DNA of 63,084 bases, filler included, from Octopus bimaculoides (taxonomy: Eukaryota), in assembly GCF_001194135.2 (NCBI RefSeq). It is 4 parts of 4 records of this genome, joined end to end, with 100 filler letters (N's around TTAATTAATTAA, not from the genome) between each part and the next. Parts side by side here need not be neighbours in the genome. Positions count along the whole stretch, not along the records: positions 38,129 to 51,796 come from NC_068983.1; 3 more parts are not named here. One strand, given 5' to 3'. The notes beneath the pieces are model-generated. The model was not told where the DNA came from, searched no databases, and was given only the letters and a program-made list of their open reading frames with translations. The translations under genes were made by a program, and so were the position numbers. Numbering within the stretch: the stretch's first letter is position 1; each line of letters begins with the position of its first letter. Shown in pieces: positions 43,951 through 50,584 of this stretch.

Positions 43951-43996
43951 TATATAAAGTTTCGGATTTTGGAAAGTGGCAGCACAAATTGCCGAG
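43951..43996 (+). promoter_or_regulatory. Core promoter (TATA box + initiator) and short 5'UTR of the secreted-protein gene
   Basis: TATATAAAG at 43951-43959. A C|A initiator falls at 43980/43981, exactly 30 nt after the first T. The ATG at 43997 sits in GCCGAGATG context (purine at -3). Confidence 0.75.
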
Positions 43997-44027
43997 ATGA
44001 AGTTATCGGTGACTGCAGCTTTTGCTG
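43997..44027 (+). CDS. Exon 1 of an unidentified secreted protein/peptide precursor (MKLSVTAAFA, phase 1)
   Basis: ATG AAG TTA TCG GTG ACT GCA GCT TTT GCT G followed by a GTAAGT donor at 44028. Basic n-region then hydrophobic residues, as in a signal peptide. Confidence 0.8.
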
Positions 44028-44081
44028 GTAAGTATCATCGTGTTTGCACTTTCTTGGATAATATTTCTGTCTCGTCTTTTA

Positions 44082-44502
44082 TCAGGCCATCCCATAAGTT
44101 CTGTCCGATTTCACCTTTTTTAAAATTGAATGAAATTTAATAGTATTTTAGAATGTCTAATGGAATTTTTAATTATTTTTATGCATTTGTATACATTTAA
44201 ACTAATTAAATATTATTTTACACTATAATAGAATTAAAATTTCTTTGATTAAAACCTTTTCTAACATGGAAGTATCCAGAGAGCATTTGAGGCACACAAT
44301 GCTTTATGAGCACATAAAAGGAAACTCTGCAGCCGAAGTGACTCGAAACATACACTCAGTTTATGGGAAAGAATTCTTGAATGAAAGAACTTGCAGAAGA
44401 TGGTTTGCAAAATTCAGAAGTGGAGATTTCAGCCTTGAAGATGAAGATCGAACAGGACGTCCAGTTGAGTTTGATGATAAGCTTCTTGAGGCATTACTTG
44501 AA
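44082..44502 (+). mobile_element. Mariner transposon 5' end (TIR plus N-terminal HTH), running into an assembly gap; in intron 1
   Basis: TA|TCAGGCCATCCCATAAGTTCTGTCCG TIR-like start. Uninterrupted ORF MEVSREHLRHTMLYE...TCRRWFAKFRSGDFSLEDEDRTGRP. Confidence 0.9.
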
Positions 44503-45494
44503 NNNNNNNNNNNNNNNNNNNNNNNNNNNNNNNNNNNNNNNNNNNNNNNNNNNNNNNNNNNNNNNNNNNNNNNNNNNNNNNNNNNNNNNNNNNNNNNNNN
44601 NNNNNNNNNNNNNNNNNNNNNNNNNNNNNNNNNNNNNNNNNNNNNNNNNNNNNNNNNNNNNNNNNNNNNNNNNNNNNNNNNNNNNNNNNNNNNNNNNNNN
44701 NNNNNNNNNNNNNNNNNNNNNNNNNNNNNNNNNNNNNNNNNNNNNNNNNNNNNNNNNNNNNNNNNNNNNNNNNNNNNNNNNNNNNNNNNNNNNNNNNNNN
44801 NNNNNNNNNNNNNNNNNNNNNNNNNNNNNNNNNNNNNNNNNNNNNNNNNNNNNNNNNNNNNNNNNNNNNNNNNNNNNNNNNNNNNNNNNNNNNNNNNNNN
44901 NNNNNNNNNNNNNNNNNNNNNNNNNNNNNNNNNNNNNNNNNNNNNNNNNNNNNNNNNNNNNNNNNNNNNNNNNNNNNNNNNNNNNNNNNNNNNNNNNNNN
45001 NNNNNNNNNNNNNNNNNNNNNNNNNNNNNNNNNNNNNNNNNNNNNNNNNNNNNNNNNNNNNNNNNNNNNNNNNNNNNNNNNNNNNNNNNNNNNNNNNNNN
45101 NNNNNNNNNNNNNNNNNNNNNNNNNNNNNNNNNNNNNNNNNNNNNNNNNNNNNNNNNNNNNNNNNNNNNNNNNNNNNNNNNNNNNNNNNNNNNNNNNNNN
45201 NNNNNNNNNNNNNNNNNNNNNNNNNNNNNNNNNNNNNNNNNNNNNNNNNNNNNNNNNNNNNNNNNNNNNNNNNNNNNNNNNNNNNNNNNNNNNNNNNNNN
45301 NNNNNNNNNNNNNNNNNNNNNNNNNNNNNNNNNNNNNNNNNNNNNNNNNNNNNNNNNNNNNNNNNNNNNNNNNNNNNNNNNNNNNNNNNNNNNNNNNNNN
45401 NNNNNNNNNNNNNNNNNNNNNNNNNNNNNNNNNNNNNNNNNNNNNNNNNNNNNNNNNNNNNNNNNNNNNNNNNGTATATATGTATATATATATG

Positions 45495-45695
45495 TATGTG
45501 TGTCTGTGTTTGTTGCCCCAACATCGATTGACAACCGATGCTGGTGTGTTTACATCCCCGTAACTTAGCGGCTCGGTAAAAGAGACCGATAGAATAAGTA
45601 CTAAGCTTACAAAGAATAAGTCCTGGGGTCGATTTGTTCGACTAAAGGCGGTGCTCCAGCATGGCCGCAGTCAAATGACTGAAACAAGTGAAATA
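45495..45695 (+). mobile_element. SINE family B 3' half (5' part in gap); in intron 1
   Basis: GACAACCGATGCTGGTGTGTTTACATCCCCGTAACTTAGCGG...GGCGGTGCTCCAGCATGGCCGCAGTCAAATGACTG. Confidence 0.9.
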
Positions 45696-46554
45696 GTATA
45701 TATATATATATATATATATATATTAATAATTTGTTTAATCAAGCCACAGTTGGTTTATTAACATTGCAAATATGACACTTGACACATTTTTTAAAGAAGA
45801 TATGTGAGTGTTGTAGATTTTACTAAATATTCATAATTAATTATTATAAAGAAGAGCTTGCTCGGATTTGCATGATATTGATCCTCCACCCATCTCGATC
45901 TTCATAAGCCCTCTCGTTGACGTCCAGAAACAAATGTTAAGTAATCGACTTTGAAAAGGGACAGTCGTTGACGTTGGAATGTATTTCTGACAATGATCCA
46001 ACAATAAGGCATTAAATACGAATTATAGGAATTATGCAGACGAGAATAATTTTCATATTGTAGAGAGCATGAAATTGCTAGAATTAGCTAATATATTTCA
46101 AGATATCAATGTTAGTTCCAGTTAATTATATAAATAGAAGTGCAGCGTCATTATAAGGAATAGTGCGTTTTCAATTCATTCCCGATGTTACAATTCACTC
46201 AATTGTTATGCTTCATCTATGTTTTGAGGAACACATTAGCATCTGTTATGCCTACTCTATAAATTTGTGTATAATTAAAGTTACCAATTTTTTTAATATA
46301 AATGGCAGCGGTTCACTTGAAGTAGAGAAATAATAGTATAACAGTTTTAGCACCTAGTCTTGTAGTTTTACGTTACGATTTTCAATACAGTGAGCGCCAA
46401 ATTTCTCATGCAACACGCTACGGTGAAAGGGAAAAAATGATAATCGTTTGTAATAGAATTAAATTGCTTACAATAAATTATTATTCTTTTCACTGTCAAA
46501 ATACAATGCTTATTTGTAATATTTTGTCTAATGAATAACCTTATTTCATTGCAG

Positions 46555-46593
46555 CTCTTTTGGCATTATGCCTAATTGCAGCAGGAGAGCCAT
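46555..46593 (+). CDS. Exon 2 (39 nt, phase 1-1): ALLALCLIAAGEP, completing the signal peptide
   Basis: Branch-like CTAAT ~25 nt upstream, acceptor CCTTATTTCATTGCAG, donor GTAAGT at 46594. Splices in frame to exon 1 to give a continuous hydrophobic h-region and a small-residue cleavage region (IAAG). Confidence 0.8.
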
Positions 46594-48361: not shown

Positions 48362-48423
<62 letters not shown>

Positions 48424-48435
48424 CACACACACACA

Positions 48436-49286
48436 CAAGGTGCGATGAGTAAACTATCGTCAAAATTACTCAAAAATGAAAATAACTTTGACCAGATTTT
48501 AAGAGATATATTTACCAAAATTACATAAAACATATCTTGAAATACTAAAGAGTAAATTTATTCAATAAAATTGCCATTGGCTTCAACCACGGCCCCCAGA
48601 ATCTCCTGCAATTCTTCTGGAGTTGGTTAATGCTGCTATAATCCTTATCTTCAGTTCATTTTTGGTGTTACAAGGAATTTTGCTAGTCTCTCGCTCAACT
48701 GCGCCTCACACATAGTAATCAAGGGGGTTGCAGTCTCTGGGGTTAGGTGGCCAGACGTTAAGGGTGATGTGGTCGCAGAAATTGTCTGACAGCCATGACT
48801 GTTTCTCCTGCTTGTGTGACACGGTGCAGAGTCCTGTTGTCAGACATGGTCTTCCAGAAGCCACCTTTTTAACCCAGGGCAGCACTACCTCCTCTAGGAA
48901 CTTGATGTAGGCTCCCGTGTTGTGTCTGAGGCCGTGTGGTGAGATGAATGGAGGCACAACGTCGCCATTACTAGTGATCATTCCAAACACCATGATGTTG
49001 ACTGGAAGTCTGATTTTTATCCTTCTGCGTATATGCCCTCAGACTGCACTGTCCTCAGATCGACACTCAAATGCTCTGAAATGTTCGTATTGGCGCTTCC
49101 AGTGCCAAGCAGTACAGCATGTCGTTTCCAACTTTCTGGCAGACTGAATTGCATCATGCTGCTGTTTTCTCACAGATGGTGCACAACTGACTCTACTATA
49201 CTGTGTAGTCGACAAAATCAAAAAACAAACAATATGCATGCGCGAAATAAAAAACAAAATGGTGACAATTTATCAATCGTACCCCG
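48436..49286 (-). mobile_element. Second, internally deleted maT-family copy retaining both degenerate TIRs; in intron 2
   Basis: MVFGMITSNGDVVPPFI...WLSDNFCDHITLNVWPPNPRDCNPLDYYV is homologous to the 14.3-14.7 kb copy. Ends CAAGGTGCGATGAGTAAACTATCGTC and GGTGACAATTTATCAATCGTACCCCG|TA. Confidence 0.8.
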
Positions 49287-50291
49287 TATATATATGTGTG
49301 CGCGTGTGTTTATACATAAGCACATGTCTTTTTTACATAAACACATGCTCCAATACATGCATAAACGTACGCGCGCACGCACACACGCAAACACACACAC
49401 ACATGACTTTGTGTCGATCCCTTCAATAATATAAGACATATATATTCACACAAACATATACAGGCACATACTCAAATGTTAAATATAAATATTTTTAAAT
49501 GCACAAAAATCCTACAAACTGACTGAATAAAAAATTCACTACCTATGTAGAGTATGTGAGGGCTCATACAAACTGTCAAGTGAAAAGTTGTAATCAGGCA
49601 TAGTTACAGCTGTATAGGTTCAATCGTAGGATGGAATTGGTCAAAATAAGAAAAGTTGAAGTTTGAGAAAAGATGGTTGAATAAATAACAGTAGTAAGAC
49701 ATTAATCTGGAGTGTAAGCTGGGAAAATGAAAAAAATTATAAAATGGCGCATAGCACAAGGAGACTTGCGACACACATGCAACGGCTTCTACCTCGTACG
49801 GTGCAGAGAACCATATCGGATATTATATCTTAGAGAGTTCCGCACTCGAATGGAGGACTAAGATCACACAACTACGTCGATGATAAAGGTAGAAACACAT
49901 AACATGAAAGTGAGAAGCTACCAAAGCTAATGGTGGATTGAAATTTCTAGCGCAGTTGGATATGGCGCACCTCGGTTTTGGTCACTTGTAGAAGAGGAGG
50001 CCTTACCTTATACATGGGTGTGTATCTACGCATGTATAAGTTAAGTGTGATAGAAAATGTTGTGATTGGCGAAGGCATAAGCTGGTGTTGATGAAACGAG
50101 TTGAGTTCTGTTCTTTATTTTGTACAGCATTCTGTTTCATAATTTCACAGCTGCAAAACCTGATCAAGTGATTTTCATTAACTAGTAGGAGCAACAAAAT
50201 TATAACCCGATTTAGATATATGTTTTATCGCTATGATACCTGTAACCGTGATCATTGCCCACATTTTGTCTCTTCATTCTCACTTCATCAG

Positions 50292-50319
50292 CGTTTTCAT
50301 TGTCCTCTTCGCCATCTAT
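50292..50319 (+). CDS. Candidate 28-nt exon (SFSLSSSPS; shifts phase 1 to phase 2)
   Basis: Pyrimidine-rich acceptor ...TCTCACTTCATCAG and GTATGT donor. Would leave a 68-nt intron before 50388. Could be chance. Confidence 0.25.
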
Positions 50320-50387
50320 GTATGTAATTGTATGCATAATCAATATGTTTGTATGTCTGCATAACATATTTCTTTATCTGCTTTCAG

Positions 50388-50405
50388 TGATTCGGAAAGC
50401 TATCC
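50388..50405 (+). CDS. 18-nt micro-exon (LIRKAI in phase 1; DSESY if reached in phase 2)
   Basis: Acceptor TTTCTTTATCTGCTTTCAG, exon TGATTCGGAAAGCTATCC, donor GTAAGT at 50406. Length is a multiple of 3 and it is open in the phase set by exons 1-2. Confidence 0.65.
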
Positions 50406-50584
50406 GTAAGTTGTCACTTTTCCTATTTTAACGAAAATCTGTAACAAATCAGTCAACTACATGCAAGCTGAAACTACTTTCCTTTACACTATCATTGTAA
50501 ACGTGATCAGATAAAAAAGAATTATCCATTCGTTGCCAAACGGTATGTACATAAGAAATATTGGCATTATTAGCGTCGGCATTA

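Follow-up and report, generated by a model that had tools for sequence, protein, structure and literature searches.

A segment of the Octopus bimaculoides genome (NCBI RefSeq assembly GCF_001194135.2), located at positions 43951 to 46593 of the window analyzed here, is probably the 5' end of a real protein-coding gene, whose product is predicted to be secreted or, possibly, membrane anchored. The window is the whole stretch of DNA under study (63,084 nucleotides, filler included); the analyzed piece covers its positions 38129 to 51796 (13.7 kb, from NC_068983.1), and all features are on the plus strand unless stated otherwise. On balance, a TATA box and two very short exons at this locus appear to form the start of an unannotated or unidentified secreted-protein gene, an assignment that relies on the ranks of the splice sites, a null model, the anatomy of the predicted signal peptide, the phase-1 intron at codon 24, and the island without transposon matches around the promoter. 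An earlier sequence-only reading of this DNA had proposed a hidden secreted-peptide gene with three tiny exons of 31, 39, and 18 nt. The letters, coordinates, exon lengths, GTAAGT ends, phase 1, and spliced product that it reported all proved exact. The proposed gene start, made of exons 1 and 2, is borne out by the null model and by the layout of the locus; exon 3 is not singled out from its competitors.

Splice sites were scored with a simple generic metazoan matrix, which is approximate. On this scale, the donor of exon 1 scored 10.8, the second highest of the 739 GT dinucleotides on the plus strand of the piece. The acceptor of exon 2 scored 7.6 (rank 13 of 625 AGs), and its donor scored 8.4 (rank 7). 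This acceptor is found in the context TTTCATTGCAG, with the longer upstream stretch CCTTATTTCATTGCAG and a branch-point-like CTAAT motif ∼22 nt upstream. When exons 1 and 2 are joined to the proposed exon 3, the product reads MKLSVTAAFAALLALCLIAAGEPLIRKAI plus one base (C), and the three junctions are all in phase 1.

Coincidence in AT-rich noncoding DNA could also bring together an ATG, a reading with hydrophobic residues, and splice motifs close to the consensus, which would then be picked up by anchoring the search on GTAAGT. The chance expectation was taken from 8000 first-order Markov simulations of the piece, which were searched for chains of an ATG-containing exon (≤90 nt) and an internal exon (6 to 90 nt) with a signal-peptide-like N terminus in the joint product. 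Under relaxed thresholds, 8.2% of the simulated sequences yielded some chain of this kind; this share, the ∼60 weak candidate exons in the piece, and the lack of external support all speak for coincidence. The observed chain, however, is much better than such chance products. A summed site score at least equal to the observed one was reached in 0.09% of the simulations, an uncharged run of ≥19 residues with a mean Kyte-Doolittle hydropathy (KD) of ≥2.2 in 0.44%, and a TATAWA motif 25 to 70 nt upstream of the ATG in 0.55%, so that each of these features was matched in about 0.5% of the simulations or fewer; three sites all scoring at least as high as the observed ones were seen in 0 of 8000. 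Since the null is a Markov chain and not a genome, these shares are not treated as probabilities. The same search of the real minus strand of the piece yielded no such chain. Under the Markov null, chance does not account for exons 1 and 2, even allowing for the ∼8-fold larger sequence scanned in the sequence-only reading, and the phase and position of their introns fit the known pattern of secreted proteins. Coincidence is therefore regarded as quite improbable.

The signal peptide was called by a heuristic analysis of its n, h, and c regions. The n region consists of MK and is basic; it is followed by 19 uncharged residues with a mean KD of 2.3 and a KD of 2.93 in the best 11-residue window of the hydrophobic core. 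Exon 2 completes this core and provides the AAG/EP cleavage site, and small residues are found at the −3 and −1 positions of both candidate sites, IAA/G and AAG/E. The resulting predicted signal peptide of 20 to 21 residues would have a length typical of eukaryotes. The second intron begins 1 nt past codon 23 and lies two codons downstream of the predicted AAG/EP cleavage site. The locus thus combines a charged n region, an h region, small residues at −3 and −1, and a phase-1 intron near the cleavage site, as in secretory proteins. The earlier claim that two very short exons share the coding of one signal peptide stands, given the strong statistics and the position of this intron.

The promoter region adds to this picture. 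A CA dinucleotide at 43980 to 43981, 30 nt past the first T of the TATA box TATATAAAG, is the likely transcription start, and the ATG at 43997 has a G at position −3. The sequence-only reading described a TATA box, an initiator (Inr), and an ATG in succession. The TATA box and the ATG are indeed present; the supposed Inr amounts to the CA dinucleotide, whose context, GGCAGCA, does not follow the consensus. The hexamer TATAAA occurs 10 times on the plus strand, TATA-like words are frequent in this AT-rich piece, and ∼10% of its ATGs have a TATAWA motif 25 to 70 nt upstream; the TATA box upstream of exon 1 can be considered supportive but not strong on its own. Both the TATA box and exon 1 lie within a 420-nt island (43661 to 44079) without transposon matches, flanked by two transposons. 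Its limits are defined by the end of the similarity to the upstream element at ∼43660 and by the start of a mariner copy at 44080.

From these features, we infer transcription, splicing, and secretion, as well as everything that can be said about the mature product. The TATA-type promoter would start transcription near 43981. Exon 1 would contribute a short leader and, from the ATG on, the first 10 codons, encoding the n region MK and the start of the hydrophobic core, after which a phase-1 intron, enlarged by the mariner insertion, would be spliced out. Exon 2 would encode the remainder of the core together with the cleavage region, completing a 21-residue signal peptide, MKLSVTAAFAALLALCLIAAG, predicted to be cut before EP. 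The second phase-1 intron, just past the cleavage site, would represent the standard junction of a signal peptide with the exons of the mature protein. These exons might be hidden in an assembly gap or located further along the piece, but the gene most likely continues beyond the right edge at 51796. Such an architecture would be that of an ordinary 5' end of a secreted-protein gene, with the split signal peptide and the mere 39 nt of exon 2 as its unusual detail. If transcribed, the locus would be a secreted-protein gene whose start is split into coding pieces of 31 and 39 nt and is missed by open reading frame (ORF)- and homology-based annotation, a small example of how short first exons can hide secretome genes in large, repeat-rich invertebrate genomes.

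Several observations weigh against this assignment. The spliced 29-aa peptide, padded with X to 41 aa, retrieved no candidate among 5.8 billion proteins, and back-translated DNA patterns for the exon 1/exon 2 junction and for exon 2 alone had 0 matches in the JGI metagenomes. Scaffolding joins the three contigs on which the three exons lie, a 5' leader that starts from the TATA box would have a length of only ∼16 nt, and the 19-residue uncharged stretch could serve as a signal anchor instead of a cleaved signal. Finally, the splice-site matrix is generic and was not trained on this organism, and the null sequences come from a Markov chain, not from an actual genome. The negative protein search has a limit of its own: an Ala/Leu-rich query like this one was expected to have thousands of chance 7-mer matches, and none were returned, which indicates that the word index is sparse, so that this search probably excludes only an identical annotated N terminus.

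Other searches were similarly negative. No match in Pfam was found for the spliced peptide, the candidate downstream exons, or the ORF at the right edge. Concatenated nontransposon ORFs from around the three exons had no protein match. Concatenated transposon ORFs, used as a positive control, had 85 matches, including NCBI eukaryote proteins and Logan contigs, and are uninformative with regard to the gene. A search for paralogous exon copies found no second copy of the exon regions within the piece. Scans of the piece for Rfam families and tRNAs returned only subthreshold, microsatellite-driven miRNA matches and no tRNA.

The coordinates of the features discussed here are collected in Table 1.

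Table 1. Features of the analyzed piece (window positions)
Feature	Position(s)	Strand	Remarks
TATA box	43951-43959	+	TATATAAAG; assigned from sequence
Exon 1, coding part	43997-44027	+	31 nt; MKLSVTAAFA plus G; ends in phase 1; donor CTG/GTAAGT
Intron 1	44028-46554	+	nominally 2527 nt; mariner from 44080 running into gap 1
Exon 2	46555-46593	+	39 nt; phase 1 at both ends; reads (A)LLALCLIAAGEP plus T, then GTAAGT
Intron 2, as proposed earlier	46594-50387	+	valid only if exon 3 is real; holds gap 2 and transposon fragments
Candidate exon 3	50388-50405	+	18 nt; phase 1 at both ends; reads (L)IRKAI plus C, then GTAAGT; unproven
Rivals of exon 3	49176-49261, 49176-49303, 50775-50821	+	open in phase 1
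Near rival of exon 3	50128-50167	+	nearly open in phase 1
Rival of exon 3	50292-50405	+	open in phase 1; shares the donor of exon 3, different acceptor
Contigs	38129-44502, 45474-46622, 47151-51796		one proposed exon on each (exons 1, 2, and 3, in order)
Assembly gap 1	44503-45473		971 N; within intron 1
Assembly gap 2	46623-47150		within intron 2; opens 29 nt past exon 2 donor
Decayed transposon-like element	41617-43660	+	upstream of promoter; outside the gene; bounds the unique promoter region on its upstream side
Mariner, young copy	44080-44502	+	runs into gap 1; terminal inverted repeat (32-33 nt) at 44080-44111
Mariner family, second copy	47189-47740	+	internally deleted; begins right after gap 2
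Mariner, C-terminal fragment	48184-48285	-	in intron 2, beside a (CA)n/(TA)n microsatellite

The gaps cut neither the exons nor the reading frames; no frame crosses them, so that the splice junctions, rather than the Ns, determine whether the frame continues. Given that exons 1, 2, and 3 are on separate contigs, their order and orientation and the lengths of the introns all depend on the scaffolding. Mariner copies adjoin both gaps, and the simplest reading is that these are repeat-induced assembly breaks, compatible with correct scaffolding. Either gap could conceal additional exons.

Transposon-filled introns, another element of the sequence-only reading, are confirmed by the mariner copies and fragments found in introns 1 and 2. 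The insertion point of the young copy is 52 nt past the donor of exon 1. Over 423 nt, it shows 96% nucleotide identity to L001, a Logan contig of 1294 nt (SRR20902413) with an intact gene for a 342-aa transposase. At the amino acid level, the octopus copy is 92% identical to the 342-aa transposase P0075; it also matches HTH_48 with an E value of 6.6e-22. About 870 nt of the 1294-nt mariner are absent from this copy, a size that fits the 971 Ns of gap 1; its right-hand inverted repeat was not seen past that gap. In the second copy, transposase residues ∼10 to 155 are joined to residues ∼318 to 356. Intron 2 also holds several microsatellites. The element upstream of the promoter accounts for most of the control matches: 78 of the 85 database proteins match the segment 41617 to 43325. 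The protein encoded by the element (∼555 aa) has no Pfam domain. Its relatives, several dozen proteins with 35 to 57% identity, come from animal genomes and from transcriptome-like contigs (Clavelina, Oratosquilla, and Cordylochernes), and the element itself shows 84% nucleotide identity to two ENA metagenome scaffolds (L002 and L003), with the similarity ending at ∼43660. It looks like a member of an uncharacterized, widespread transposase-like family.

Alternatively, the promoter and exons 1 and 2 might be a dead or never-expressed relic, left from a gene or from a duplicated 5' fragment that was disrupted by transposons and has no functional product. The mariner so close to the exon 1 donor, the transposons that fill the space after exon 2, the absence of a recognizable downstream coding exon from the piece, and the absence of a matching protein from the searched collection would all be consistent with such a relic. 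However, the ATG, both reading frames, and the three splice sites are all intact, intronic transposons are normal for a genome of this type, and the negative protein search is weak. A relic is viewed as unlikely, and the start of a real secreted-protein gene remains the preferred assignment.

Simple and short interspersed repeats are also common in the piece. TA, CA/TG, and CT microsatellites are dense at 38941 to 39012, 40260 to 40353, 41103 to 41227, 48300 to 48437, 51247 to 51322, and 51463 to 51492; they yield many spurious repetitive ORFs and subthreshold Rfam matches to mir-297 and mir-466. The short interspersed repeats, which share the motif GCTTAGCGGCATTTCGTCC..., are similar to short interspersed nuclear elements (SINEs), although ARAGORN detected no tRNA-like head in them. 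The segments 41466 to 41568, upstream of the gene, and 50654 to 50756 are inverted repeat copies with 78% identity. Two direct copies, at 50568 to 50644 and 50800 to 50876, are located just downstream of candidate exon 3 and show 71% identity.

The candidate exon 3 is far less distinctive than the first two exons. Its acceptor, in the context CTGCTTTCAG with the longer upstream stretch TTTCTTTATCTGCTTTCAG, scored 6.9 (rank 20), and its donor (TCC/GTAAGT) scored 4.6, a low value that reflects the TCC at the end of the exon. Downstream of exon 2, five other candidate exons open in phase 1 were found at thresholds equal to or above those of exon 3, part of them in transposon or SINE-like sequence. 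With five comparable candidates in the piece, an exon as short as exon 3 evidently arises easily. Its reality is possible but unsupported, and so are any inferences from its six residues. This applies to the earlier suggestion that a cationic LIRKAI segment points to a gland, skin, venom, or antimicrobial peptide, which was based on precisely these six residues; the guesses at gland, venom, or antimicrobial function have no basis in the data.

The 1.4 kb past exon 3 contain SINE-like repeats, a single AATAAA at 50707, and two candidate exons; no further micro-exon with a strong donor was found there. The first candidate (51154 to 51227) has an acceptor score of 7.9 and a GTGAGT donor with a score of 7.6 and is open in phase 0 only. 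If exon 3 were spliced to it in phase 1, the reading would be QVLD followed by a stop, for a precursor of 33 aa; the single AATAAA past exon 3 lies upstream of this candidate. The second one, 51710 to 51796, is opened by the top acceptor of the whole plus strand, which ends in CCACCCTCCTCTCTCAG and scores 11.1. Its phase-1 frame stays open as far as the edge, over 29 codons, and reads LFQPLLGRDNLPLQSSDLIFYHLICDVDK after exon 3 or FFQPLL... after exon 2. On the minus strand, an open frame (51706 to 51796) enters from beyond the right edge, reads ...FIDIADKMIKNKITALEWEIVPPKQWLED, and terminates at a stop codon at 51706 to 51708; this frame may be the tail of a gene or of a transposon ORF cut by the edge. 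The segment 51710 to 51796 might represent the next exon; alternatively, it might be no more than the complement of this minus-strand ORF. As a fourth exon, neither 51154 to 51227 nor the segment from 51710 to the edge is accepted or rejected.

The sequence-only reading likened the locus to the micro-exon genes (MEGs) of schistosomes. In a true MEG, exons 1, 2, and 3 would be followed by further tiny symmetric phase-1 exons, and the product would be a short secreted peptide specific to the lineage, with possible variation through exon skipping. Indeed, exons 2 and 3 (39 and 18 nt) are multiples of three, run from phase 1 to phase 1, and end at GTAAGT, and the long introns and the signal peptide match the description of MEGs. 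Only five GTAAGT hexamers are present on the plus strand, about the number expected from its composition, and three of them are the donors of exons 1 to 3. However, exon 3 is statistically indistinguishable from its five competitors, the remaining 1.4 kb offer no additional strong-donor micro-exon, and known MEGs carry 10 to 20 micro-exons and are described as specific to Schistosomatidae. Furthermore, symmetry in phase 1 is common to extracellular proteins at large. For secreted proteins, an intron of phase 1 within or behind the signal peptide is a general rule and not a signature of MEGs. With just one supported internal exon, the MEG-like label is not supported, and a MEG is a doubtful explanation of this locus. 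Still less likely is that the locus is the first MEG outside flatworms, a cephalopod-lineage gene with the signal and a short mature peptide encoded entirely by tiny symmetric phase-1 exons scattered through transposon-filled introns; if it were, standard annotation would not see it, and its product could be varied by the skipping of exons. Among the papers searched, none linked MEGs with octopus or other cephalopods. Given that phase-1 introns in and after signal peptides are the known norm, the start of an ordinary secreted-protein gene opens no new question by itself, and the locus would gain interest only if the remainder of the gene also proved to be built of micro-exons.

In schistosome MEGs, 10 to 20 symmetric micro-exons of 6 to 81 bp make up most of the coding sequence; these genes have long introns and a signal peptide and are described as Schistosomatidae specific (bioRxiv 10.1101/2023.06.21.545858). 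The octopus locus resembles them in its N-terminal signal peptide (according to the heuristic analysis), symmetric internal exons (39 and 18 nt) in multiples of three, introns of several kilobases, and the difficulty that it poses for ORF-based annotation. It differs in having one supported internal small exon (39 nt) and an unproven one (18 nt). No homology between the two was found in searches of Pfam and the protein collection, where the 29-residue product, too short for remote homology, had no match. Membership of the octopus locus among MEGs cannot be claimed, and it seems rather unlikely that it works like one.

A phase-1 intron also interrupts the signal peptide in five Drosophila salivary glue genes, Sgs1, Sgs3, Sgs7, Sgs8, and Eig71Ee (PMC6352337). 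As in the octopus locus, a short first coding exon is followed by a phase-1 intron inside the signal-peptide sequence. In the glue genes, a single short intron leads into one large exon; the octopus locus, in contrast, has a kilobase-scale intron and then a second intron; there is no sequence relationship between them.

The V genes of vertebrate immunoglobulins and T-cell receptors have a leader split by a phase-1 intron, with a short first exon and a few residues in the next one. They share with the octopus locus the division of the signal peptide by a phase-1 intron. Unlike in octopus, the intron is of ∼100 nt and the second part of the leader belongs to a large V exon, and the two are unrelated.

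Tordai and Patthy are said to have described a phase-1 intron at the signal-peptide cleavage region of animal secreted-protein genes. In such genes generally, a phase-1 intron ends the signal peptide near residues 20 to 24, and the octopus intron after codon 23 plus 1 nt conforms to this pattern. Animal genes with signal peptides show an excess of introns in phase 1 around the cleavage site, near residue 20 (Nielsen and Wernersson, PMC1626468). What sets the octopus locus apart from the generic secreted-protein gene is the extra phase-1 intron after codon 10, which leaves an exon of 39 nt between the two introns.

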